Assembly (NCBI GenBank): GCA_950097015.1
Contig: CATNEN010000008.1
Span: 3,782,001 to 3,846,000, forward strand
Direction: 5' to 3'
Source of the DNA: Macrostomum hystrix
Taxonomy: Eukaryota > Animalia > Platyhelminthes
DNA: 64,000 bases
The position numbers and the translations under genes are program-made. The notes below the pieces were generated by a model that had not been told where the DNA came from, did no database searches, and saw only the letters and a program-made list of their open reading frames with translations. Positions 35,128 through 57,228 of this stretch are shown here, in pieces; within the stretch, counting starts at the first letter, position 1; every line of letters starts with the position of its first letter.

Positions 35128-37129
35128 TCACGTTTCGTCTCTGGCCAAATATTCCCTGTTCACATAGGCTCGAATATTCAACAGAGCAAAGTAGTGCTCA
35201 ATCTCCGGCAGGATGTCGCCAGCCAGAGTCGCCATTTTCAACGTCGGCACCAGCGGGCTGCGATCGCTAAAGTGCTCCATCACGTCGCTCAGCTTCACTC
35301 TGTCTATTGTAATTAGCCGCTTCAGTTTTGCAATTTGGCGTTCGTTGTACAACTTCTTGCACCAAATCTGAACGATAATAATTATTATTGCTGGGCTGTG
35401 GGAAATGGCACATCCTTTGATGACTCTAGACCTACAGCCAGCGAGGAGGCAATTCTGCCCATTCCGCTGACTCCTGAGCACACGCACACAGACACCGTAC
35501 ACAGGCACACGCTCACACAGGTGTGTACATCTGTCCTTTGACTTTCTCATCGTCAGGCAGTGTACACTCTCACTGTGCATTGGAGGTTGGCCCTCGAGGG
35601 CGTAAATTGCACGACAAGCCCCCAAGTCTTCTCTCCGCGGCTGCGCCCCAAATAAATGTGGCCTCGTTGTGTCATCAAGCTCAAGGACCACCTCTATGGA
35701 TTTTATGATAGTATAGGATAAGTTGCGTCAAAGCAATTCTTACCGCATACAAGTGGACGATATTTTCGAACAGGTCCCTACGATAATAACGAATGAACTC
35801 CAGACTGTAGTCACTTAGAGGGTTGTAGATCAGCCTGCCAGAGTTAGTCTCCAGGTCCTGAGTAAGTGAGCGGTTAACAGCGGAAGCAAGACGGAATCCG
35901 AAGGCATGGGGGCGGATTCTTAGGGCACAGGAGCGGATTTCCTAATCACAGGGGCGGATTCCTATATCACAGGGGCGGATTCCTAGATCACAGGGGCGGA
36001 TTTCCATGTCACAGGGGCGGATTCCTATATCACAGGGGCGGATTCCAATATCACAGGGGCGTATTCCTATATCACAGGGGCGGATTTCCATGTCACAGGT
36101 GTGGATTCTTAAACCACAGGGGCAGATTTCTATATCACAGGGGCGGATTCCAATATCACAGGGGCGGATTCCAATATCATAGGGGCGGATTCGAATATCA
36201 CAGCGGCGGATTCTTATACCACAGGGGCGGATTCCAATATCACAGGGGCGGATTGTTATACCACAGGGTGCGGATTCCAATATCACAGGGGCGGATTCCA
36301 ATATCACAGGAGCGGATTCCAATATCACAGGGGCGGAATTCTTTACCACAGGGGTGGATTCCCATATCGCAGGGGCGGATTTTCATATCGCAGGGGCGGG
36401 TTCCGATGGCGCAGGGGCGGATTCCTATTATCTGAGCGGCGGATTCCTATTATCTGAGCGGCGGATTCCTATTATCTGAGCGGCGGATTCCTATTATCTG
36501 AGCGGTGGATTCCTATTATCTGAGCGGCGGATTCCTATTATCTGAGCGGCGGATTCCTATTATCTGAGCGGCGGATTCCTATTATCTGAGCGGCGGATTC
36601 CTATTATCTGAGCGGCGGATTTCTATTATCTGAGCGGCGGATTCCTATTATCTGAGCGGCGGATTCCTATTATCTGAGCGGCGGATTCCTATTATCTGAG
36701 CGGCGGATACTTATATCACAGGGGCGGATTTTCATATCGCAGGGGCGGATTCCAATATCACAGGGGCGGATTTCCATATCGCAGGGGCGGGTTCCATGGC
36801 GCAGGGGCAGTAGGAAGAAGTGACGAGTTCAGGAACACTGAAAGCCAAGTCACCTGCATGACGTGAGTGTCGACCTTCCAGTAGCAGGGCGGATTTTCCA
36901 GCCAGCAGCCCACGGAAATACCGGGCGGCACCCAGGCGGGGCGGGCGGCGGTTTTTGACTGGCTGGCGGGCCGCTGCGCACTGACATAGCACAGCTCCCG
37001 GATGCCAATCTGTTTACTGTTTTCCAGGACGAGCGAGTAGACTCTGCGGAGGACAGGCGCTGAGCTGGCGGCTGAAACCAGCTTGTTTGAGCCTGTGGCC
37101 GCCTTCTTGTTGTTCACCAGTGGCACCAT
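35128..37129 (-). CDS. Uncharacterised protein, tandem paralog X2 (209 aa)
   Basis: Exons 37129-36854, 35857-35744, 35367-35128; all phase-0 GT-AG introns; open frame; colinear homology to X1. Confidence 0.85.
35385..35672 (-). mobile_element. SINE family A copy in X2 intron 2
   Basis: Body and (ATT)n tail in reverse orientation; head truncated. Confidence 0.85.
35925..36810. repeat. 21-bp satellite (CAGGGGCGGATTCCTATATCA) with nested 22-bp array (ATTCCTATTATCTGAGCGGCGG, ~36425-36710), filling X2 intron 1
   Basis: Direct tandem units. Confidence 0.95.
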
Positions 37130-37796: not shown

Positions 37797-40255
37797 TCAG
37801 CGAATCTTCTCGATGACCTTGCGATTGATGTACGATCGGACAGTCAACAGCCCCAGGTAGTGCTCGATGTGGGGCAGGATGTCGTCCTCGAAGTTGGCGG
37901 CCTTCAGCGTCGGGGCCACGGGGCTGGACAGGTTGAAGTGCGGCCTGAAGTCCTTCAGCGGCAGTTTCTCAGGCAGAAGCAGCTGGTTGATGTGGGCGAG
38001 CTGGCGTTCTGTGTAAAGCTGCTTGCACCAGATCTGGCCAAGTGGGTGAGGATGAGGACGGCTCGATGTTACCTAAGATTTTACCTAGGGGTTGTAGCCT
38101 AGTGGATAGTGCGTCGGACTCATGGCTTGAAGGTTGGGGGTTCGATTCCCGACTCCTATGTAAAAATTTGCGTCCTTGAGCAAGACACTTAACTCTGCAT
38201 TGCTTCAGTTCACCCAGCTGGTAAAGGGGTACCATCGAGGGTTGGTGTGGCATCCCCCCAGTCCATGGACTGAACACAGAAATCAGTTTTTATCTCCTAC
38301 TATTTATGCGAGTTCAAATGAAAAATAAAATTGAGACGCAAATGAGCTCAGGTCTCACCCGAAACAGCTGGAAAATATTTTTGAACAAGTCGGGCCTGTA
38401 GCAGCGGAGCAGCTCTAGGCTATAGTCAGCCAGAGGGTTATAGATCAGCTTGCCTGCGCTGGTGTCGAGGTCCTGACAATGGCCAACGGTTCTGTAGCTG
38501 AGCACAAGAGAATGGCAGCCTCAAGGACCAGCAGACACAACCTTAAAGACTAGCAGAAACAACCCCTAAGACCAGGAGACACAACCCCAAAGACCAGCAG
38601 ACACAACCCCAAAGACCAGGAGACACAACCCCAAAGACTAGAAGACACAACCCCAAAGACCAGCAGACACAACCCCAAAGACCAGGAGACACAACCCCAA
38701 AGACCAGCAGACACAACCTCAAAGACCAGCAGACACAACCTCAAAGACTAGCAGACACAACCCCAAAGACTCACATACACAACCCCAAAGACCAGCAGAC
38801 ACAACCCCAAAGACTAACAGACACAACCTTAAAGACTCACAGACACAACCTTAAAGACTCACAGACACAACCTCAAAGACCAGCAGACACAACCCCAAAG
38901 ACTCAGACACAGCCCCAAAGACTCACAGACACAACCTCAAAGACCAGCAGACACAACCCCAAAGACCAGCAGACACAACCCCAAAGACCAACAGACACAA
39001 CCCCAAAGACCAGCAGACACAAGCCCAAAGACCAGCAGACACAACCTCAAAGACTCACAGACACAACCCCAAAGACTCACAGACACAACCTCAAAGACCA
39101 GCAGACACAACCCCAAAGTCCAGCAGACACAAGCCCAAAGACCAGCAGACACAACCCCAAAGACCAGCAGACACAAGCCCAAAGAATCACAGACACAACC
39201 TCAAAGACTAGCAGACACAACCCCAAAACTAGCAGACACAACCCCAAAGACTAACAGACACAACCTTAAAGACTCACAGACACAACCTTAAGGACTCACA
39301 GACACAACCTTAAGGACTCACAGACACAACCTTAAAGACTCACAGACACAACCCCAAAGACTCACAGACACAACCTCAAAGACCAGCAGACACAACCCCA
39401 AAGACTAGCAGACACAACCCCAAAGACTAGCAGACACAACCTCAAAGACTAGCAGACACAACCTCGAAGACCAGGAGACACAACCTCAAAGACTAGCAGA
39501 CACAACCCCAAAACTAGCAGACACAACCCCAAAGACTCACAGACACAACCTTAAAGACTCACAGACACAACCCCAAATACTAACAGACACAACCTCAAAG
39601 ACTAGCAGACACAACCCCAAAGACTAGCAGACACAACCCCAAAGACTCACAGACACAACCCCAAAGACTCACAGACACAACCTCAAAGACCAGCAGACAC
39701 AACCCCAAAGACTAGCAGACACAACCCCAAAGACTCACAGACACACCCCCAAAGACTCACAGACACAACCCCAAAGACTCACAGACACAACCTCAAAGAC
39801 CAGCAGACACAACCCCAAAGACCAGCAGACACAACCTCAAAGACCAGCAGACACAACCCCAAAGACCAGCAGACACAACCCCAAAGACCAGCAGACAACC
39901 TCAGTTCTTTCCTCCTGTTCACCTTTAGCGGGTAGACGTTAATCTTCCAGAAGCAGGCGGGCTTCTCATTCCAGCAGTCCTGAGGAATGTGTGCTGGTAC
40001 CCAGAATGGTCGAGCCATTGTAGTTGTCTGGCCGCTGGCAGACCTGCTCAGGTCGACGTAGGACACCTCCTTGATGGCCATGCGTTTCCCGTCTTCAACG
40101 TTAAGTAAGTAAACTTTGCGGATGACTGGTGCACTGTTCAAAACCGGTGGCGCCTGTTTGACTCTGTGCGATGAATCGGCGAGTTTCATATTATTTTGCT
40201 GCATCAATTGGTTGCTAAGCAGTTTCAGACTGCCCTTTTTCTGTTGATGTGACAT
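37797..40255 (-). CDS. Uncharacterised protein, tandem paralog X1 (227 aa)
   Basis: Exons 40255-39923, 38472-38359, 38033-37797; phase-0 GT-AG introns; middle exon is 114 bp, as in X2. Confidence 0.85.
38087..38278 (+). mobile_element. SINE family B copy in X1 intron 2 (3'-truncated)
   Basis: A box TAGCCTAGTGG, B box GGTTCGATTCC, CORE-like CCTTGAGCAAGACACTTAACTCT..CAGTTCACCCAGCTGGTAAAGGGG. Confidence 0.83.
38520..39897. repeat. 21-bp satellite (CACAACCCCAAAGACCAGCAG and variants) filling X1 intron 1
   Basis: Direct tandem units, ~65 copies. Confidence 0.96.
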
Positions 40256-40807: not shown

Positions 40808-43800
40808 TCACAGCTTGTCCAGGAAGCGGTCAAGCGGCGGTATGCCCTCCTGCAGGCCCTTGCGCTTGCGAGTGTCCAACACAATCTGGTAGGGCTTGGT
40901 GCCGCTAGTCAGCGGGTCTCCGGGCATCACCTGCCAGTGGTCGAATACGCACTGCGGGAAGGCCTGGCCGCCCGTGGCCTGGCGCAGGTCGGAGGTGAAG
41001 CCGAAGCTCTCGTTTACTGGCAGGTGGGCCTTCACGATGAACATTGGCGTGCCGGTCACCTGTAAGAATTCGTTGGACGTCAGTTACAAGTATCACCTGG
41101 TTAAAGCTTAGTTCTGGGAATCATGGTATGATGGGAGAGGATCTGGGAGAATTGCATAGGGAACAGATAAGATGGAATTTGAGGAGAGGATCTGGGAGAG
41201 TTGTATGGGGATCAGAGAGTACTGTGACAAAATCTGTTTCACTCGCCTGCTCCTCGGAGAACACGACACCGCGACGACGGTTTAGCACTCCGTAGATGCC
41301 GCCGACGGCGTTCTCCGGGCACTGGATCTCGCACAGGTAGACTGGCTCCAGCAGGGCTGGCTCGGCAGTCAGCACAGCGGCCAGGAAGCAGCGCCTGGCG
41401 GCGGTGATGATCTGGTCACCGCCCCGGTGCGCGGCATCCGAGTGCAGCGTCACGTCAGCGATATCGAAGCGGCAGCCGCGCATGTTCTCATCGCAGAGGA
41501 CGCCCTCCTTGGTGGCCCACTGGAAGGCGGCGACAACGCTGTCCTTGATCTCGGCCAGGTACTGCACACCCTTGGTGACGTCAACAACCAGGTTGGGGCC
41601 GTTGGTGTCCGGGCCGAAGCACCAGATCTTGCGGGCCTCAGTGACGTCCCAGTTGAAGTTTTCAACGAAAATTCGCCCGCGCTCCTTGGCATCCTGCCGC
41701 CAAGAGATTATGCCGTCGTCGATGTCCTTGCAGAGATCTTCATCCATCGGGCGGGCCTTCATGTACAGCCTGTTGAGCTTATTCCTGGATTTTGACAGAA
41801 CCACCTGAAATTAAAAGACGCAAATTAATTTTGGCACTGAGAAATAAAAATCACTGCAATACGCCTCTTTATAACACATATGCACACCTGGTTGCTCTCG
41901 TTGGTGACAGTCTCGCGGTAGGACACCACAGGGTCGCCAGTCTTGATTGGGATCTGAGCGTGGTCCTCCTCCAGATCCCTGAGGCAGATCTCGAGATGCA
42001 GCTCGCCAGCTCCGGCGATGATGTGCTCACCGGACTCCTCGTTGTAGATCTGCACCATGGGGTCGGACTTGGCCAGTCGCTTCAGGCCCTCAACCAGCTT
42101 GGGCAGATCGGACGGGTTCTTGCAGTCCACGGCGACGCGAACGACGGGCGACACGCTGAACTTCATGACGCGCATGTTGTGCGCAGCGGCGAATGTCGTG
42201 ATGGTGCCGGTCTTGACCAGGAACTGATCGACGCCAACCAAGCCGCAGATGTTGCCGCAGGGCACGTCCTCGATTGACTCAGCGTAGCGACCCATCATAA
42301 GAACGGTTGACTGAATGTTCTTCTCGAACAAGTCGTCTTTCTTGCCATGCGTGTAGTTGGGGCCCATGATGCGTACTTTTCTTGCACTCACCACGCCGGA
42401 AAAGACTCGACCAAAAGCGTAGAAGCGGCCCTTATCGGAGGTGGGCACCATCTTGGAGATGTACATCATCAGCGGAGCCTTCGGGTCGCAGGTCTTGATG
42501 CCGACGGCGGCTTCGTCGTCGTGCGGTCCCTCGTACAGCAGCTCCATGCGGTAGCGCTGGGAGGTCACTGGCGATGGCAGGTGGATGGAAATCATCTGCA
42601 GCAGGGTGTCGCCGGCCGGCAGCCACTTGCGCATCATCACCTTCAGCAGAGGCTTGTCCCGCAGCTCGCGCTCCTCAGCGTCCAGCTTGATGTTCATCTT
42701 CTCGGCTAGTTTCAAGGCCTGTTCCGTAGGCTTTTCCATTATAGTTTCAAAAACCTAAAGAGTTTGATAGTAAAACATTATATTGCCTTTGTAGCTCGTA
42801 TTATGAATCATTAACGATACGGTTGACTAGAAAATGTCTATTGACAATGAAGATACTAACTACTTTTACCTCATAGATTGGGTCGAGCACGAACTGGATG
42901 AAGCCGCGAATGCACTTGTCATTCTCGGGTGTCTTTACCCACTTCTTGGTCTCCGAGTTGTAGAAGTTGTCACCCCACAGCCGCTTCATGAGCTTCTGCG
43001 GCTCGATCTTGAACTTGGAGGCGTACATCTCGGCGAACTGCTTCAGCGTGAACGCCCAAGCGTGCAGGCCGGAGCCGAAGCCAACGGTGCCCTTCTCTGG
43101 CGCAACGAAGATGTTGCCCATCGGTCCGCCCTCTTCACCGAACTGGGCGATGATAACGTTGATGTTCTCAACGACGCGCTGGAACTGCTGGTACAGATCC
43201 TCCTTGCCCTTCTTCAGCGTCAGCAGCGAGCAGTCCATCTTGTTCATGAACAGCACCGGCTTGATGCGCTCAGCGATGGCCTGGCGGAGCACAGTCTCCG
43301 TCTGCACGCACACGCCGGAGTTGCAGTCCACAACGACCAAGGCACCGTCAGAGCGGCAGTCACCTGATCAAGATTATAGCATAAAAGTCAGACCGTCGTG
43401 ACAATTCACATGCGAAAAGGGTTTTTTAGCCAACTCACCTCGGAGCTGAAGTCAACGTGGCCGGGAGAGTCGATGAGGTTGATCAGGAAGCCGCACTCGT
43501 CGGTTCCGTCGCTGCGGGTCGAAACCTCCTGCAGGCTCTTAACGTACTTGACATCAGGCTCGGTCAGCTCGTAGTACATGCTCACAGCAGTAGACTTGAT
43601 GGTGATGCAGCGCTCCTGTTCGTCCTTGCGAGTGTCCGTGAACCGGGTCTCGCCAGCTCTAGCGGATGCGATGATGCCGGCCTTGGACAGCAGCGAGTCA
43701 GTCAGCGTGGACTTGCCATGGTCCACATGGGCAATGACGGACATGTTGCGGATGTTCCGCTTGTTGTCCATCATGGCGCGTATTCGGTTCATCGAGATTT

Positions 43801-43979
43801 TCACCTGCGTTTGTTGGCAACGTTTTCAACCTTTGTTTAACAATCTTGGAATCGCTTATCGAGCATGTTATAACTGAAGGGGCAAGTCCGTGTGAGTAAA
43901 GTGCAAAATGTCCAAGTATCTACGCCTATGAAGAACGCCACGCAGTAGGTGTAGCGGTGACAGACCGTCGACTTACCAT
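40808..43979 (-). pseudogene. EEF2: eEF2 paralog (copy 1): divergent domain IV, with a 10-bp frameshifting deletion as assembled
   Basis: Exons: ATG 43979-43977, 43804-43439, 43363-42870 (494 bp vs 504 bp in copy 2), 42754-41888, 41804-41247, 41059-40808. GTPase motifs [13 protein letters not shown] and NKMD present. Pseudogene status rests solely on the deletion at 43350/43351. Confidence 0.75.
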
Positions 43980-44949: not shown

Positions 44950-45345
44950 GCTAGCAGCTAGGAGTTGGTCTTTAGGAGTGATTTCTAGCAGCTAGGAGTT
45001 GGTCTTTAGGAGTGATTTCTAGCAGCTAGGAGTTGGTCTTTAGGAGTGATTTCTAGCAGCTAGGAGTTGGTCTTTAGGAGTGATTTCTAGCAGCTAGCAG
45101 TTGGTCTTTAGGAGTGATTTCTAGCAGCTAGGAGTTGGTCTTTAGGAGTGATTTCTAGCAGCTAGGAGTTGGTCTTTAGGAGTGATTTCTAGCAGCTAGG
45201 AGTTGGTCTTTAGGAGTGATTTCTAGCAGCTAGGAGTTGGTCTTTAGGAGTGATTTCTAGCAGCTAGGAGTTGGTCTTTAGGAGTGATTTCTAGCAGCTA
45301 GGAGTTGGTCTTTAGGAGTGATTTCTAGCAGCTAGGAGTTGGTCT
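44950..45345. repeat. 34-bp satellite (TAGCAGCTAGGAGTTGGTCTTTAGGAGTGATTTC), ~11 copies
   Basis: Direct tandem units. Confidence 0.96.
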
Positions 45346-45629
45346 TTTGGACGTAAAAAGAAAACGGGATAGTTCGCTGTAGTCAAATACTGTGAAATTG
45401 TTTTAAAGTACAACTACTTGGCAACTAAGTCTGTCTGTCCTGCCTACTGCGGTAAAAAGTGCACTTAATTGAATACACAATCGGACCAGACCAAAGCAGA
45501 CGGTTGGAAGTTGCCTGGCAGTGCAATACTCATGCAAACTATACTCAAAAAGTTACCGAGCCTAGAACAGCTAGTTAAGGTTCTACCGGTTTCAAAGCTA
45601 ACTTGAAAGTTAAAATGTATATAAAATAC

Positions 45630-48600
45630 TAGATATGACTATCCATGGATAAAATACTAGATTTGACAATCCACGGATATAATACTAGATTTGACAATCC
45701 ATGGATAAAATACTAGATTTCACAATCCACGGATATAATACTAAATTTGACAATCAATTGATATAATACTTGATTTCACAATCCATTGATATAATACTAG
45801 ATTTGACAATCCATGGATATAATATTAGATATGACAATCCATGGAAAAGAGACTGGATTGGACAATCCATAGATATGAGACTGGATTGGACGATTCATAG
45901 ATGAGAGACTGGATTGGACAATCCATACATAAGAGACTGGATTGGACGATTCATAGATAAGAGACTGGATTGGACGATTCATAGATGAGAGACTGGATTG
46001 GACGATTCATAGATAAGAGACTGGATTGGACGATTCATAGATAAAAGACTGGATTGGACGATTCATAGATAAAAGACTGGATTGGACGATTCATAGATAA
46101 AAGACTGGATTGGACGATTCATAGATGAGAGACTGGATTGGACGATTCATAGATGAGAGACTGGATTGGACGATTCATAGATAAAAGACTGGATTGGACG
46201 ATTCATAGATAAGAGACTGGATTGGACGATTCATAGATAAGAGACTGAATTGGACGATTCATAGATAAGAGACTGGATTGGACGATTCATAGATAAAAGA
46301 CTGGATTGGACGATTCATAGATAAAAGACTGGATTGGACGATTCATAGATAAAAGACTGGATTGGACGATTCATAGATAAAAGACTGGATTGGACGATTC
46401 ATAGATGAGAGACTGGATTGGACGATTCATAGATGAGAGACTGGATTGGACGATTCATAGATAAGAGACTGGATTGGACGATTCATAGATGAGAGACTGG
46501 ATTGGACGATTCATAGATAAGAGACTGGATTGGACGATTCATAGATAAAAGACTGGATTGGACGATTCATAGATAAAAGACTGGATTGGACGACTCATAG
46601 ATAAGAGACTGGATTGGACGATTCATACATAAGAGACTGGATTGGACAATCCATACATAAGAGACTGGATTGGACAATCCATACATAAGAGACTGGATTG
46701 GACAATCCATACATAAGAGACTGGATTGAACGATTCATAGATAAGAGACTGGATTGGACAATCCATACATAAGAGACTGGATTGGACGATTCATAGATAA
46801 AAGACTGGATTGGACAATCCATACATAAGAGACTGGATTGGACAATCCATACATAAGAGACTGGATTGGACGATTCATAGATGAGAGACTGGATTGGACA
46901 ATCCATACATAAGAGACTGGATTGGACGATTCATAGATAAAAGACTGGATTGGACGATTCATAGATAAAAGACTGGATTGGACGATTCATAGATAAAAGA
47001 CTGGATTGGACGATTCATAGATGAGAGACTGGATTGGACGATTCATAGATGAGAGACTGGATTGGACGATTCATAGATAAAAGACTGGATTGGACGATTC
47101 ATAGATAAGAGACTGGATTGGACGATTCATAGATAAAAGACTGGATTGGACGATTCATAGATAAAAGACTGGATTGGACGATTCATAGATGAGAGACTGG
47201 ATTGGACGATTCATAGATGAGAGACTGGATTGGACGATTCATAGATAAGAGACTGGATTGGACGATTCATAGATAAGAGACTGGATTGGACGATTCATAG
47301 ATAAGAGACTGGATTGGACAATCCATACATAAGAGACTGGATTGGACAATCCATACATAAGAGACTGGATTGAACGATTCATAGATAAGAGACTGGATTG
47401 GACAATCCATACATAAGAGACTGGATTGGACGATTCATAGATAAAAGACTGGATTGGACGATTCATAGATAAAAGACTGGATTGGACAATCCATACATAA
47501 GAGACTGGATTGGACAATCCATACATAAGAGACTGGATTGGACGATTCATAGATGAGAGACTGGATTGGACAATCCATACATAAGAGACTGGATTGGACG
47601 ATTCATAGATAAGAGACTGGATTGGACGATTCATACATAAGAGACTGGATTGAACGATCCATAGATAAGAGACTGGATTGGACAATCCATACATAAGAGA
47701 CTATATTGAACGATTCATAGATAAAAGACTGGATTGGACAATCCATAGATAAGAGACTAGATTGGACAATCCATACATAAGAGACTGGATTGGACGATTC
47801 ATAGATAAAAGACTGGATTGGACAATCCATAGATAAGAGACTAGATTGGACAATCCATACATAAGAGACTGGATTGAACGATTCATAGATGAGAGACTGG
47901 ATTGGACAATCCATACATAAGAGACTGGATTGGACGATTCATAGATAAAAGACTGGATTGGACAATCCATAGATAAGAGACTGGATTGGACAATCCATAG
48001 ATAAGAGACTAGATTGGACAATCCATACATAAGAGACTGGATTGAACGATCCATAGATAAGAGACTGGATTGGACAATCCATACATAAGAGACTGGATTG
48101 GACGATTCATAGATAAAAGACTGGATTGGACAATCCATACATAAGAGACTGGATTGGACAATCCATACATAAGAGACTGGATTGAACGATTCATAGATAA
48201 GAGACTGGATTGGACAATCCATACATAAGAGACTGGATTGGACGATTCATAGATAAAAGACTGGATTGGACGATTCATAGATAAAAGACTGGATTGGACA
48301 ATCCATACATAAGAGACTGGATTGGACAATCCATACATAAGAGACTGGATTGGACGATTCATAGATGAGAGACTGGATTGGACAATCCATACATAAGAGA
48401 CTGGATTGGACGATTCATAGATAAGAGACTGGATTGGACGATTCATACATAAGAGACTGGATTGAACGATCCATAGATAAGAGACTGGATTGGACAATCC
48501 ATACATAAGAGACTATATTGAACGATTCATAGATAAAAGACTGGATTGGACAATCCATAGATAAGAGACTAGATTGGACAATCCATACATAAGAGACTGG

Positions 48601-50580
48601 ATTGGACGATTCATAGATAAAAGACTGGATTGGACAATCCATAGATAAGAGACTAGATTGGACAATCCATACATAAGAGACTGGATTGAACGATTCATAG
48701 ATGAGAGACTGGATTGGACAATCCATACATAAGAGACTGGATTGGACGATTCATAGATAAAAGACTGGATTGGACAATCCATAGATAAGAGACTGGATTG
48801 GACAATCCATAGATAAGAGACTAGATTGGACAATCCATACATAAGAGACTGGATTGAACGATCCATAGATAAGAGACTGGATTGGACAATCCATACATAA
48901 GAGACTGGATTGGACGATTCATAGATAAAAGACTGGATTGGACAATCCATAGATAAGAGACTAGATTGGACAATCCATACATAAGAGACTGGATTGGACA
49001 ATCCATACATAAGAGACTGGATTGGACAATCCATACATAAGAGACTGGATTGAACGATTCATAGATGAGAGACTGGATTGGACAATCCATAGATAAGAGA
49101 CTGGACTGGATTGGACAATCCATACATAAGAGACTGGATTGGACAATCCATACATAAGAGACTGGATTGAACGATCCATAGATAAGAGACTGGATTGGAC
49201 AATCCATACATAAGAGACTGGATTGGACGATTCATAGATAAAAGACTGGATTGGACAATCCATAGATAAGAGACTGGATTGGACAATCCATACATAAGAG
49301 ACTGGATTGAACGATTCATAGATGAGAGACTGGATTGGACAATCCATACATAAGAGACTGGATTGGACGATTCATAGATAAAAGACTGGATTGGACAATC
49401 CATAGATAAGAGACTGGATTGGACAATCCATAGATAAGAGACTAGATTGGACAATCCATACATAAGAGACTGGATTGAACGATTCATAGATAAGAGACTG
49501 GATTGGACAATCCATACATAAGAGACTGGATTGGACGATTCATAGATAAAAGACTGGATTGGACAATCCATAGATAAGAGACTAGATTGGACAATCCATA
49601 CATAAGAGACTGGATTGGACAATCCATACATAAGAGACTGGATTGGACAATCCATACATAAGAGACTGGATTGGACAATCCATACATAAGAGACTGGATT
49701 GGACAATCCATACATAAGAGACTGGATTGGACAATCCATACATAAGAGACTGGATTGGACAATCCATACATAAGAGACTGGATTGGACAATCCATACATA
49801 AGAGACTGGATTGAACGATTCATAGATGAGAGACTGGATTGGACAATCCATAGATAAGAGACTGGACTGGATTGGACAATCCATACATAAGAGACTGGAT
49901 TGGACAATCCATACATAAGAGACTGGATTGAACGATCCATAGATAAGAGACTGGATTGGACGATCCATACATAAGAGACTGGATTGGACGATTCATAGAT
50001 AAAAGACTGGATTGGACAATCCATAGATAAGAGACTGGATTGGACAATCCATACATAAGAGACTGGATTGAACGATTCATAGATAAGAGACTGGATTGGA
50101 CAATCCATACATAAGAGACTGGATTGGACGATTCATAGATAAAAGACTGGATTGGACAATCCATACATAAGAGACTGGATTGGACGATTCATAGATAAAA
50201 GACTGGATTGGACAATCCATAGATAAGAGACTGGATTGAACGATTCATAGATAAGAGACTGGATTGGACAATCCATACATAAGAGACTGGATTGAACGAT
50301 CCATAGATAAGAGACTGGATTGGACAATCCATACATAAGAGACTGGATTGGACGATTCATAGATAAAAGACTGGATTGGACAATCCATAGATAAGAGACT
50401 AGATTGGACAATCCATACATAAGAGACTGGATTGAACGATTCATAGATGAGGGACTGGATTGGACAATCCATACATAAGAGACTGGACTGGATTGGACAA
50501 TCCATAGATAAGAGACTGGACTGGATTGGACAATCCATAGATGAGAGACTGGACTGGATTGGACAATCCATGGATAAAAG
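45630..50580. repeat. 28-bp satellite (GAGACTGGATTGGACGATTCATAGATAA / ..ACAATCCATACATAA), ~170 copies, between the eEF2 genes
   Basis: Direct tandem units with variant patterning; AT-richer degenerate units at 45630-45850. Confidence 0.98.
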
Positions 50581-51415: not shown

Positions 51416-54400
51416 TCACAGCTTGTCCAGGAAGCGGTCAAGCGGCGGTATGCCCTCCTGCAGGCCCTTGCGCTTGCGAGTGTCCAACACAATCTGGTAG
51501 GGCTTGGTGCCGCTAGTCAGCGGGTCTCCGGGCATCACCTGCCAGTGGTCGAATACGCACTGCGGGAAGGCCTGGCCGCCCGTGGCCTGGCGCAGGTCGG
51601 AGGTGAAGCCGAAGCTCTCGTTTACTGGCAGGTGGGCCTTCACGATGAACATCGGCGTGCCGGTCACCTGTAAGAATTCGTTGGACGTCAGTTACAAGTA
51701 TCACCTGGTTAAAGCTTAGTTCTGGGAATCATGGTATGATGGGAGAGGATCTGGGAGAATTGCATAGGGAACAGATAAGATGGAATTTGAGGAGAGGATC
51801 TGGGAGAATTGCATAGGGAACAGATAAGATGGAATTTGAGGAGAGGATCTGGGAGAATTGCATAGGGAACAGATAAGATGGAATTTGAGGAGAGGATCTG
51901 GGAGAATTGCATAGGGAACAGATAAGATGGAATTTGAGGAGAGGATCTGGGAGAGTTGTATGGGGATCAGAGAGTACTGTGACAAAATCTGTTTCACTCG
52001 CCTGCTCCTCGGAGAACACGACACCGCGACGACGGTTCAGCACTCCGTAGATGCCGCCGACGGCGTTCTCCGGGCACTGGATCTCGCACAAGTAGACTGG
52101 CTCCAGCAGGGCTGGCTCGGCAGTCAGCACAGCGGCGTAAAAGCAGCGCCTGGCGGTCGGGATAATCTGACCGCCGCCGCGGTGAATGGCGTCAGTGTGG
52201 AGCGTCACGTCAGCAATGTCGAAGCGGCAGCCGCGCATGTTCTCATCGCAGAGGACGCCCTCCTTGGTGGCCCACTGGAAGGCGGCGACAACGCTGTCCT
52301 TGATCTCGGCCAGGTACTGCACACCCTTGGTGACGTCAACAACCAGGTTGGGGCCGTTGGTGTCCGGGCCGAAGCACCAGATCTTGCGGGCCTCAGTGAC
52401 GTCCCAGTTGTAGGTGTCGGCCAGGATGCGGCCACGGTCCTTGACGTCCTGACGCGGCGCGATCTTGCCATCGTCGATATCTTTGCAGAGGTCCTCGTCT
52501 AGCGGACGGGCCTTCATGTACAGCCGATTGTGCTTGTTGGGTGACTTGGACAGCACCACCTGTGGTTTAGGGAGAGATGGTATACGATTAGATTATAATC
52601 TAATCTAATCACTAACCTCTAATTAGTGATTAATTAGAGTTGCAGCACTGACTTGTTAGTTCAACAGACAACTGATGGATGATTAGGAGAGCACGTTAAT
52701 CATGGTAGATAAGCAAGTAATGGTAATAAGTAAATTCAAGTAAGAAAAACCACGGTTTTCTCTGGGTAATAACCTGGTTGCTCTCGTTGGTGACAGTCTC
52801 GCGGTAGGACACCACAGGGTCGCCAGTCTTGATTGGGATCTGAGCGTGGTCCTCCTCCAGATCCTTGAGGCAGATCTCGAGATGCAGCTCGCCAGCTCCG
52901 GCGATGATGTGCTCACCGGACTCCTCGTTGTAGATCTGCACCATGGGGTCGGACTTGGCCAGTCGCTTCAGGCCCTCAACCAGCTTGGGCAGATCGGACG
53001 GGTTCTTGCAGTCCACGGCGACGCGAACGACGGGCGACACGCTGAACTTCATGACGCGCATGTTGTGCGCAGCGGCGAATGTCGTGATGGTGCCGGTCTT
53101 GACCAGGAACTGATCGACGCCAACCAAGCCGCAGATGTTGCCGCAGGGCACGTCCTCGATCGGCTCGGTGTAACGGCCCATCATGAGGATGGTGCGCTGG
53201 ATGCTCTTCTCGAACAGGTCGTCCTTCTTGCCGGGCGTGTAGTTGGGGCCCATGATGCGCACCTTGTTGGCGCTGACAACACCGGAGAACACACGGCCGA
53301 AGGCGTAGAAGCGGCCCTTATCGGAGGTGGGCACCATCTTGGAGATGTACATCATCAGCGGAGCCTTCGGGTCGCAGGTCTTGATGCCGACGGCGGCTTC
53401 GTCGTCGTGCGGTCCCTCGTACAGCAGCTCCATGCGGTAGCGCTGGGAGGTCACTGGCGATGGCAGGTGGATGGCAATCATCTGCAGCAGGGTGTCGCCG
53501 GCCGGCAGCCACTTGCGCATCATCACCTTCAGCAGAGGCTTGTCCCGCAGCTCGCGCTCCTCAGCGTCCAGCTTGATGTTCATCTTCTCGGCCAGCTTTA
53601 GGCCCTCCTCGGCCGGCTTCTCCATCACCACTTCGAACACCTGGTTAGAGAAGGCAGGGCGGGCCGCATAGATAAGAGTTGAGATGATATATTAGAAATC
53701 TGATTGGCAAATATGCACCTTATCATCAGAAACACTGAATCCTCAACAGAGTCCACAACTGTGGTCCACTCAGCCTGGGGCAGTAAAGGGTCATCACATA
53801 AGAGTTTAGCAGAATCAAAATTTAAGTAGGACACCTAAGCCAGTGAGACCATTTGCAGCTTCATTTGAGAGTGTTCTGATGGCTAAATGTGATATTTTAG
53901 AAAAAAAAGTGTGTTAAAACAATAAAAAAGGCTTCATATGAGTTAAGCACATGAAAATGTATAGCAGAAAAATAGAACAGCATAGTTGTGGTCACAGTCA
54001 CACTGACTTAAGCTTCGTTAGACACACTAAATCAGCAAGTGCATCTATATACTGCATTAGCCTGGGGCACAATGAGTTCAACGACTAATCAAATGCGAAG
54101 CAAAGCTGAAAATTTACAAAGCACTACTCACCTGGTAGATTGGGTTGAGCACGAACTGGATGAAGCCGCGAATGCACTTGTCATTCTCGGGTGTCTTTAC
54201 CCACTTCTTGGTCTCCGAGTTGTAGAAGTTGTCACCCCACAGCCGCTTCATGAGCTTCTGCGGCTCGATCTTGAACTTGGAGGCGTACATCTCGGCGAAC
54301 TGCTTCAGCGTGAACGCCCAAGCGTGCAGGCCGGAGCCGAAGCCAACGGTGCCCTTCTCTGGCGCAACGAAGATGTTGCCCATCGGTCCGCCCTCTTCCC

Positions 54401-57228
54401 CGAACTGGGCGATGATAACGTTGATGTTCTCAACGACGCGCTGGAACTGCTGGTACAGATCCTCCTTGCCCTTCTTCAGCGTCAGCAGCGAGCAGTCCAT
54501 CTTGTTCATGAACAGCACCGGCTTGATGCGCTCAGCGATGGCCTGGCGGAGCACAGTCTCCGTCTGCACGCACACGCCGGAGTTGCAGTCCACAACGACC
54601 AAGGCACCGTCAGTGACGCGCAGAGCGGCAGTCACCTGATCAAGATTATAGCATAAAAGTCAGACCGTCGTGACAATTCACATGCGAAAAGGGTTTTTTA
54701 GCCAACTCACCTCGGAGCTGAAGTCAACGTGGCCGGGAGAGTCGATGAGGTTGATCAGGAAGCCGCACTCGTCGGTTCCGTCGCTGCGGGTCGAAACCTC
54801 CTGCAGGCTCTTAACGTACTTGACATCAGGCTCGGTCAGCTCGTAGTACATGCTCACAGCAGTAGACTTGATGGTGATGCAGCGCTCCTGTTCGTCCTTG
54901 CGAGTGTCCGTGAACCGGGTCTCGCCAGCTCTAGCGGATGCGATGATGCCGGCCTTGGACAGCAGCGAGTCAGTCAGCGTGGACTTGCCATGGTCCACAT
55001 GGGCAATGACGGACATGTTGCGGATGTTCCGCTTGTTGTCCATCATGCCACGAATTTGACTTACAGTGAAGTTCACCTGGATTTAGTTTGAATGGTCGGC
55101 AGAACCTTCTGACATGATGTACTGAATGCTACATGATTTAAATGCTAATGGCAATGATACCAAATGATACCAAAACAGTTGTCTTCAGTCCATCTAGTAG
55201 CTATGATGCCCACATAGAATTTTTAGGGCAATATATAAATATCATCACAATAATGGCTTGTCTAATGAGAAAAATGTTATTAACTTGCCTTAGCAACAGT
55301 ACCAAACAATTTTTTTTTACTTTACAACACATCATTTTTAATAAGATGATAAGTTCTATCTGTTTCTTAGTTTACTACACTTTAAAAAGTTATTTTAAAT
55401 TTTATGCTATTAAATGTTGCTTATTGTATGATATAACAAACTCAGTTCTTTTTTCTCTTCTCAATATGCTGTTTTGTTAATTTAATTTAATTTAATCTGA
55501 TCTGATCATTTAATTTTAAACATTATTTCCTATTATTAACCAAATTCCTGTTCAAAAATGACAAAACAGACATTTTTGGAGTAAAATGTTTAGCTATTCA
55601 AGAATTTTATTATTGCATTAAGTATACTTGACTGAATTCATTTTATTTGCTATAGACAAGATCATTCTTTGTGCCCACAAGAAAAAATAAAGGCTAGAAT
55701 GCATATAAAAAATCTTTTTTGCACACAAAGTTAAAAGCTTTAAAAAGTTTATTGATGCCCATGTAAACACTTAAGTGGACTACAATGGAATGCAACAGAC
55801 CATAAAAGTAGTACAATGGACTGCAATAGACAACAGTAGGACCAAGGCAGTCATTTTTATTTTTTTATGATATGGCTTTAAGAGCACTGCTGATTTCAAG
55901 TTAACCATTTGTTTTAATTTAACTTATTTTCAAAAATTAAAAAGTATAAAAAGTATATATAATTTCAGAAAAAATCAAATAATTTGAACAAAAATAGTTT
56001 CACTGACAGTTTCATGGACATTTTCCACCTACACTTTTCTAAATTGACGAGCATAACTTGCGCCAACAGTTTCACAGACAGTTTCCACTGACAGTTTTCT
56101 AAATTGAGTTTTCTAAACTCAAATGAGTATAACTTGCGCTGACAGTTTCCACCAACAGTTTTCCAAATTTATCCCAAACTGTCAGTGAAAACTGTCTACA
56201 AATTTTTAACCACAGTTTGACCGACAGTTTCCACACTTACAGTTTCAGAAAAAATTCGGAAAACTGTTGGTGGGGTTTCAGACCACTTTGGCAAAAGACC
56301 ACATTGGCGAAAGACACTTTGGCGAAAGCCACTTTGGCGAAGCCACATTGGCAAAAGGTTTTTTTTGCCTTAATGCTTGACCACTTTGGCGCAGTCATTA
56401 CTGTGGTTTTGTTTTACTTTATATCCAATTAACCATTTGAAATATTCAAGTCTCCTCAGTCTCACAAAATTGAGTCCACTGAAATTATGTCCTCAATAAC
56501 ACATGACTGATTTGATGTGTTATTAGCATACTAAATATTCTTGAAAGCCTAAGGGGCGGCTGGGTTGAGAGAAAAACATGACATTTATTTATAATGTCTC
56601 AAATACAAATTAATCGAAAACGAATTAATTATTTGAATATTTCAGATGGTTAATTCTATATAAAGTAAAACAAAACCGTAGTAAAAGGCAAAGAAAAACC
56701 TTTCGCCAATGTGGCTTTGCCAAAGTGTCTTTTGCCAAAGTGGTCGGTACCCATTGGTGGAAATTGTCAGTGAAACTGTTGGTGCAAGTTATACTTGTGT
56801 TTTTATAGACCCAGTTTATTACACATAAAAAAGTTAAATGTCCTAAATAAATTCTAAGTGTTTATACTAATAGCCCTAAGACTTTAGACCAACTGTGAAT
56901 TTTCTAACTCATTTAGTTTTTTTACTTAGGAAATACATAAAAATCTAATTCAAGGATATTTTTATTGAGCTTGCATTTAATGCATGTGTCCATCTCAACG
57001 TCTATGAAGGTCAATGTCAGTTAAGAAGCAATTAGATAAAATAAAAATAATAATTCCACCGAGCGCAAGTGGATAAATTTAATTAGCAATGATTTATAGC
57101 TTAATAAGACAGTGTCTACAGAAACATTTTTAGTCAAATTAAATAAAAACATATTCGACACATTCACAGATTAAATGAGTTACAACAGTAAATAATTGTT
57201 TACAAGAACCGACAAACTAACTTACCAT
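51416..57228 (-). CDS. EEF2: Eukaryotic translation elongation factor 2, canonical copy (copy 2), 849 aa
   Basis: Exons: ATG 57228-57226, 55076-54711, 54635-54132, 53640-52774, 52559-52002, 51667-51416; total 2550 nt, open. Begins M-VNFTV..IR; T56 site [13 protein letters not shown]; SKSPNKHNR; diphthamide loop [17 protein letters not shown]; ends FLDKL. Last intron is GC-AG. Confidence 0.96.
51742..51950. repeat. 49-bp tandem repeat (4 units plus a partial) in the last intron of eEF2 copy 2
   Basis: Units start at 51742, 51791, 51840, 51889 and 51938 (partial). Confidence 0.95.
56270..56752. mobile_element. MITE-like element with imperfect TIRs and subterminal ACCACTTTGGC repeats, nested in a CTGACAGTTTCCAC-repeat foldback in eEF2 intron 1
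   Basis: GACCACTTTGGCAAAAGAC on the left and GTCTTTTGCCAAAGTGGTC on the right are exact inverses; no clean TSD. Confidence 0.6.

Follow-up and report, generated by a model that had tools for sequence, protein, structure and literature searches.

A divergent, frameshifted eEF2 paralog with an altered domain IV tip beside a canonical eEF2 gene of Macrostomum hystrix

Can an animal keep a second eEF2 whose domain IV tip would escape diphthamide modification and the toxins that exploit it, or does such a gene represent a paralog on its way to being lost? The question is raised by a 64,000-nt stretch of the genome of the flatworm Macrostomum hystrix (contig C8:3782001-3846000, hereafter the window, to which all coordinates refer unless a contig is named), in which the minus strand carries a tandem pair of eEF2 genes, copy 1 (43979-40808) and copy 2 (about 57228-51416). 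The genome (220,453,370 bases in 42 contigs) is represented by the assembly of the inbred line SR1, built with canu from PacBio long reads and polished with Arrow and Pilon; the inbreeding coefficient of the line is about 0.998 (PMC10468722). A preliminary description of the locus had predicted copy 1 to be a diphthamide-free, toxin-resistant elongation factor, with long-running decay as the alternative. Our analysis favours the following history: copy 1 should be a very recently inactivated divergent paralog, possibly a null allele fixed in the inbred line, a reading to which we give a probability of about 0.55.

Two linked eEF2 genes and the domain IV tip of copy 1

The gene models of copies 1 and 2 were derived from their mutual alignments and from splice sites, and gave the following features.

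40808-43979, minus strand: copy 1, a variant eEF2 gene of six exons with one frameshifting lesion (alignment to copy 2, splice sites and Pfam)
43977-43979, minus strand: copy 1, candidate start codon closing exon 1 (ATG/GTAAGT), 172 nt upstream of the exon 2 acceptor (from the sequence only)
43439-43804, minus strand: copy 1, exon 2, residues 2-123, carrying the P-loop and DxxG motifs; the same as copy 2 from residue 12 on
42870-43363, minus strand: copy 1, exon 3, 494 nt versus 504 nt in copies 2 and 3, with a 10-bp deletion in the switch II segment
43244-43246, minus strand: copy 1, premature TGA, codon 163 of the spliced frameshifted frame (conceptual splicing)
41888-42754, minus strand: copy 1, exon 4, residues 292-580, domains II and III (alignment and Pfam)
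41247-41804, minus strand: copy 1, exon 5, residues 581-766, domain IV and the first part of domain V; the next intron is GC-AG (alignment and Pfam)
41769-41795, minus strand: copy 1, domain IV tip loop SKSRNKLNR (canonical SKSPNKHNR), with P596R and H599L
41397-41447, minus strand: copy 1, diphthamide loop, with I714A, G719D, P723T and T724A
40808-41059, minus strand: copy 1, exon 6 with the stop codon, one synonymous base apart from copy 2
51416-57228, minus strand: copy 2, an intact canonical eEF2 gene and likely conversion donor
55076-54711, 54635-54132, 53640-52774, 52559-52002 and 51667-51416, minus strand: exons of copy 2, to which a candidate ATG exon is added at 57228-57226

The splice sites of copy 1 are canonical throughout, the last intron being of the GC-AG type as it is in copy 2. 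Copy 2 codes for an intact eEF2 of the canonical type, 848 residues long without the initiator methionine. The five-domain build of eEF2 was also recovered from the exon pieces of copy 1, which matched the Pfam families GTP_EFTU, D2, EFG_III, EFG_IV and EFG_C above cut-off (exon 4 was used in the Pfam and protein-fragment searches as the pieces 42086-42754 and 41888-42046), and exon 5 matched solved eEF2 chains at 7.6e-88.

A third, intact canonical eEF2 gene, copy 3, was located on another contig (C5:3350272-3353940). Its protein differs from that of copy 2 at 8 positions, and the two genes are separated by a synonymous distance of 0.33 with a dN/dS of 0.018. Copies 2 and 3 agree at all 42 residues where copy 1 departs from copy 2, and therefore every replacement has occurred on the copy 1 lineage. 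Exon 4 of copy 3 is 98.6% identical to that of copy 2 and its other exons 84-94%, suggesting that conversion has taken place between those loci too.

In human numbering, for which solved human eEF2 chains were aligned and 589 was added to the exon-5 residue number, the changes of copy 1 are P596R, H599L, I714A, G719D, P723T, T724A and Y730L, and His715 is kept. The Arg and Leu codons of SKSRNKLNR lie at 41786-41784 and 41777-41775, and in the diphthamide loop Ala is encoded at 41432-41430, the histidine equivalent to human 715 at 41429-41427 and Asp at 41417-41415, whereas in copy 2 the strings at 52193-52167 and 52550-52533 are canonical. All the residues and coordinates given for the two copies in the preliminary description were recovered; its numbering of the first six changes, made by hand, was borne out by the alignment to the human structure, and the replacement of QRT by QST that it mentioned was found at residue 440. 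Copy 1 has lost the conserved tip motifs of domain IV. In a set of 120 unrelated eEF2 fragments, His occupies position 599 in 114 of 115, position 714 is always Ile or Val, position 719 is Gly in 118 of 120 and position 723 is Pro in 119 of 120; the residues of copy 1 at human 599, 714, 719 and 723 occur in none of these 120 fragments.

In the diphthamide loop, the Gly717Arg mutation stops diphthamide formation on His715 and leaves translation apparently unaffected (PMC2816718). Gly719Arg, Ile714Asn and Ser584Gly are rarer mutations of the same kind (PMC2816718). The earlier statement that 714 and 719 are sites where mutations of mammalian cells can block the modification stands for both positions (hamster-cell mutations Ile714Asn and Gly719Arg; PMC2816718), the change listed at 719 being to Arg and not the 'G719D' to which it referred. 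Copy 1 is therefore substituted at known modification-blocking positions by position only, the residues being different, and its former protein would have been a poor substrate for diphthamide synthesis. In the other loop, the significance that had been attached to P596 and H599 agrees with their role as the stacking pair, a Pro and a His, that holds the neighbouring tRNA-contacting lysine in position (PMC6143161). In human numbering the trio is K598, P596 and H599, and copy 1 is deprived of both stacking partners.

Mosaic structure of copy 1, selection in its islands and the deletion

The 134 coding differences between copies 1 and 2 are strongly clustered: the longest identical coding run reaches 573 nt, against a maximum of 238 in 10,000 permutations. 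Outside five islands, only 6 differences are found in 2082 coding bases (99.7% match), and 694 of the 849 codons of copy 1 are essentially identical to those of copy 2. Intron 2 is identical in the two copies, as is intron 5 apart from the number of 49-nt repeats, while introns 3 and 4 and both the 5' and the 3' flanks cannot be aligned. The islands are the following.

43775-43801, minus strand: island A, residues 3-11, adjoining the unalignable intron 1
42707-42884, minus strand: island B, residues 287-307, across the unalignable intron 3
42275-42418, minus strand: island C, residues 404-451, domain II, within exon 4, including the QRT to QST change
41655-41801, minus strand: island D, residues 582-630, from the first codons of exon 5, beside the unalignable intron 4
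41382-41465, minus strand: island E, residues 694-721, 84 nt within exon 5, carrying the diphthamide loop

Differences clustered in this way mark recent gene conversion between old duplicates. The donor is likely to be copy 2, because the converted tracts have the G/C-ending codons and the canonical residues of copies 2 and 3, and conversion would thus have run from copy 2 to copy 1. Heterology stops conversion tracts, and islands A, B and D need no selective explanation since they adjoin the unalignable introns 1, 3 and 4. The SKSRNKLNR loop, which starts three codons into exon 5 and spans the region 3-11 codons from intron 4, may owe its escape to this simple mechanical cause. Islands C and E lie inside exons, between identical tracts; those of island E extend over 189 nt on one side and, on the other, over 45 nt up to a single synonymous difference. 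By our own estimate, made post hoc, an internal island falling over the diphthamide loop is a coincidence of about 1 in 20, which is suggestive only, and the survival of this island could be due to chance or to selection.

The islands amount to 155 codons (465 nt) with 128 differences, distributed as 26, 20 and 82 over codon positions 1, 2 and 3 (64% at the third). There are 78 synonymous differences for about 105 sites, which corresponds to saturation, and 50 non-synonymous differences for about 360 sites; island C (144 nt) contributes 24 and 9, respectively. Neither stop codons nor indels are present, the neutral chance of finding no stop being 0.03-0.06. In neutral simulations with an equal amount of change (four mutation models, 1000 runs each), 73-80 amino-acid differences were expected, with a minimum of 60, versus the 40 observed. 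Long-running decay is consequently rejected for most of the history of copy 1, every neutral run having given at least 60. The dN/dS of the islands is bounded at roughly 0.04-0.2, versus 0.02 in the canonical genes, and the values near 1, the stops and the indels by which neutrally evolving pseudogenes are recognized are not encountered in them. The replacements in islands B and C spare conserved positions (1 of 26, versus 11 of 38 variable ones).

Within the islands, the distance of copy 1 from copies 2 and 3 is about four times that between copies 2 and 3, and the GC3 of copy 1 is 0.66, versus 0.81 in copy 2 and 0.86 in copy 3. That the variant patches are old and were never homogenised, as had been proposed, is upheld by their near-saturated synonymous divergence between identical flanks. 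From these comparisons, copy 1 is an old paralog, under selection for most of its history, with a weaker codon bias and a constraint looser than that of the canonical eEF2 genes, and it was probably expressed at a lower level.

The lesion that interrupts copy 1 is of another age. Its exon 3 is devoid of 10 bases present in copies 2 and 3, with the breakpoint between 43352 and 43351 and a 3-nt microhomology (CTG) at the flanks; the frameshift against which the preliminary description had warned is thus true of the assembly. The deletion takes out LRVT codons of the switch II segment, splits the Pfam GTP_EFTU match between profile positions 85 and 94, and shifts the frame to the TGA at 43246-43244 (codon 163), which falls within the GTPase domain, with three exon junctions still to follow. 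It is the sole lesion in copy 1. The assembled gene does not have an open frame through the G domain and switch II, and combines the disrupted frame with retained introns, as non-processed pseudogenes do. As a rule, a stop upstream of exon junctions leads to nonsense-mediated decay, and the copy 1 transcript would be subject to it. The frame would be restored by an alternative donor 4 nt downstream, but this possibility was rejected: the donor is weak (GTTGGC) and would still leave the switch II segment replaced. The surroundings of the deletion match copy 2 over about 900 bp with one difference, and the deletion is younger than the conversion, hence extremely recent, because the tract that flanks it is otherwise that of copy 2. 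We infer that it is genuine and no assembly error, and a private null allele is plausible in a line with such an inbreeding coefficient.

Taken in order, these events would compose the history that we favour. Copy 1 would have arisen as an old tandem paralog of canonical eEF2 and would have been selected for a long time as a coding gene with a weaker codon bias. The tip of its domain IV would have changed, with the loss of the Pro/His stacking pair of SKSPNKHNR and the gain of four changes around the diphthamide histidine. Repeated and very recent conversion from copy 2 would then have overwritten two of its introns and about 82% of its coding sequence, with the five islands left over, after which the microhomology-flanked 10-bp deletion in exon 3 would have broken the frame, so that the transcript would end at codon 163. 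As assembled, copy 1 is predicted to make no elongation factor.

Expression, relatives and the rival explanations

The history of a recently inactivated paralog has to be confronted with the possibility that copy 1 is a live and specialised gene, weakly expressed, whose tip would escape diphthamide and toxins or would serve another ribosome-binding role, whose deletion would be an assembly error or a private null allele, and whose loop island would be kept by selection. We regard this as the less probable explanation. The signature of purifying selection in the islands, the intact splice sites, the candidate start exon and the single lesion are all compatible with it, as are the youth of this lesion relative to tracts that differ from copy 2 by less than 0.3% and the near-complete inbreeding of the line. 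The diphthamide-loop island, just 84 nt long, intra-exonic and bordered on both sides by identical tracts, includes two positions (714 and 719) where mutations are known to block diphthamide (PMC2816718). Two loci with Diphthamide_syn (PF01866) matches, of the DPH1/DPH2 type, were detected on contigs C7 and C39, and the canonical copies are presumably modified and toxin-sensitive.

Against a live gene stand the frameshift, which is present in a polished assembly, the post hoc nature of the loop coincidence, and the results of the expression and relative searches. One DNA run contained 0.92 of the sampled words of the locus, while eight small runs from three studies contained 0.50-0.56; the expected shares are 0.57 for the copy 2 mRNA alone, 0.81 with the copy 1 mRNA in addition and 0.66 for the copy 2 genomic DNA alone. 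The small runs, whose types are guessed, weakly suggest transcriptomes in which copy-1-specific words are apparently absent. No copy-1-like protein appeared among the best 240 eEF2 fragments retrieved with exon 5 and part of exon 4 (best identities 77% and 85%), full-length eEF2 being outside the search, so that these fragment searches say little about orthologs. An exact-product look-up of the exon 5 open frame gave no match, in a set that possibly excludes records close to this genome. A metagenome scan for D-A-x-H-R-G-G-D-Q-I-I returned a single locus, Ga0209700_100266:7898-7929. This sole metagenomic eEF2 with G719D is a decayed, plant-like eEF2 pseudogene with several stops on an AT-rich contig of 91 kb. 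In the papers covered, a literature search found no report of an animal eEF2 paralog of this kind. The strongest form of the proposal, in which Macrostomum would keep a weakly expressed second eEF2 with no Pro/His clamp on the lysine that contacts tRNA and an unmodifiable loop, acting as a diphthamide-free translocase or ribosome-binding factor insensitive to diphtheria-like toxins, with selection guarding the loop island and the frameshift being a private null or an assembly error, appears rather doubtful. A diphthamide-free, toxin-resistant function is a reasonable hypothesis about the past or present protein.

Could copy 1 then be a long-dead pseudogene, refreshed by conversion from copy 2, whose islands are decayed remnants? 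The frameshift would be explained, as would the relaxed codon bias and the replacement of near-invariant residues (H599L, I714A, G719D, P723T and the R-to-S change in QRT), and in islands D and E conserved positions are indeed not spared. This explanation is nevertheless improbable: the excess of third-position differences, a number of amino-acid differences that is half of the neutral expectation and below every simulation, the lack of stops and indels in 465 nt at 28% divergence and the avoidance of conserved positions in islands B and C all oppose it. Least probable is that reads placed on the wrong copy during assembly or polishing produced the mosaic or the deletion artificially. Both copies do contain long identical stretches and short-read polishing was used, but misplaced reads erase differences; they would create neither islands of 84-147 nt dominated by third-position changes nor a 10-bp deletion foreign to copies 2 and 3, and the DNA run recovers nearly all the words of the locus.

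Several observations weigh against the recent inactivation of a long-selected paralog. The synonymous distance is saturated, and dN/dS can therefore only be bounded. The replacements in islands D and E affect 7 of 32 conserved positions versus 12 of 45 variable ones, a pattern that can be explained by a change in what the domain IV tip does or by a late neutral phase, between which the data do not discriminate; a neutral phase of the needed length would usually leave indels or stops. By a hand count, conserved positions are replaced in 5 of 23 cases in the tip loops versus 3 of 35 elsewhere, a difference that a rough estimate gives as not significant. The expression argument rests on word shares in assembled contigs, which drop rare variants of an abundant mRNA. 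Finally, the assembly derives from noisy long reads followed by polishing, and the deletion may be an error.

Neighbouring features, known systems and meaning of the locus

The spacer between copies 1 and 2 (about 7.6 kb) is largely made of a satellite.

45637-50558, strand not assigned: 28-nt satellite, 175 units, occupying most of the interval from copy 1 to copy 2

Further tandem arrays lie near the pair at 44951-45351, 38522-39897 and 35926-36795, with units of 34, 22 and 21 nt, and the four arrays yield long spurious open frames on both strands. The last intron (41060-41246 in copy 1, 51668-52001 in copy 2) has the GC donor GCGAGT, where copy 3 has GTGAGT, and contains a minisatellite of 49-nt units, of which copy 2 has 4.7 and copy 1 three fewer. 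A 66-nt element (55183-55248, minus strand, and C5:3350117-3350183, plus strand), lying in intron 1 of copies 2 and 3, is 80% conserved amid otherwise unalignable sequence. A TGATGA box close to the 5' end and a CTGA box that forms the 3' end make it resemble a C/D-box snoRNA; it is not found in the short intron 1 of copy 1, and an Rfam scan of intron 1 of copy 2 matched no known RNA family.

The initiator methionine was first attributed to a trans-spliced leader ending in AUG; candidate cis sites were then found in all three copies and may provide it, ATG/GTAAGT being seen likewise upstream of copy 2 (57228-57226) and copy 3. A Macrostomum-type leader ending in ATG has many exact copies in the genome. 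Tandem arrays of its 3' end, repeated about every 11.6 kb, are present on C17, C15 and C42 (e.g. C17:2765, 14410, 26055 and 37700). One locus has the leader followed by a GT donor and is thus an SL RNA gene (SL, spliced leader), while three loci have the full leader fused to other sequence, the arrangement that retrocopies of trans-spliced mRNAs should have.

A close parallel to the diphthamide loop of copy 1 is found in the toxin-resistant eEF2 alleles of hamster and yeast cells, which are changed in the same loop, at Gly717 (to Arg) and at two of the positions altered in copy 1, 714 and 719, with the histidine kept; in these mutants it is unmodified and translation is still supported (PMC2816718). 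Their residues are Asn 714 and Arg 719 (PMC2816718), whereas those of copy 1 are Ala and Asp, and copy 1 has in addition two more loop changes together with P596R and H599L, and is a separate, frameshifted gene known from sequence alone. In archaea whose genomes lack dph genes, EF-2 paralogs (aEF-2p) have degenerate tip loops (Narrowe et al. 2018, PMC6143161), and parabasalid EF-2, likewise from a lineage lacking these genes, has a Gly-to-Asn change two residues past the histidine (PMC6143161). Copy 1 resembles them as a second EF-2 gene in which the conserved tip motifs of domain IV are altered and the five-domain build is kept. The aEF-2p genes, however, are ancient, divergent over their full length, mostly without the histidine and unaccompanied by dph genes, whereas copy 1 keeps the histidine, occurs with DPH1/2-type genes and is identical to its canonical neighbour over 82%, so that it does not belong to that class.

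Two other systems touch on the remaining properties of copy 1. The human SCA26 mutation P596H, which lowers reading-frame fidelity, replaces the same proline of SKSPNKHNR; copy 1 differs in having Arg and in having lost the stacking partner His599 as well. Gene conversion can occur between a non-processed pseudogene and its functional tandem neighbour, and copy 1 shares with such pseudogenes its tandem position, its retained introns, long identical tracts that include introns, islands beside heterology and one frameshift. It differs from them by the long purifying selection in its islands, suggesting a gene that worked until very recently.

Diphthamide is nearly universal in eukaryotic eEF2, and why a modification exploited by toxins is kept is an open question. 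Because copy 1 is frameshifted in the one assembly available, the functional proposal is a lead and not a finding. If it were true, a natural animal paralog with the histidine kept and the loop changed at modification-blocking sites would be a ready-made experiment on the retention of diphthamide, and would also be informative about the part played by the Pro596/His599 clamp in keeping the reading frame. If copy 1 is instead a gene that is dying, it still illustrates that conversion can make a diverged paralog look nearly identical to its neighbour, with old functional differences hidden in short islands, and that the assignment of short-read expression or proteomic data between such copies can mislead.

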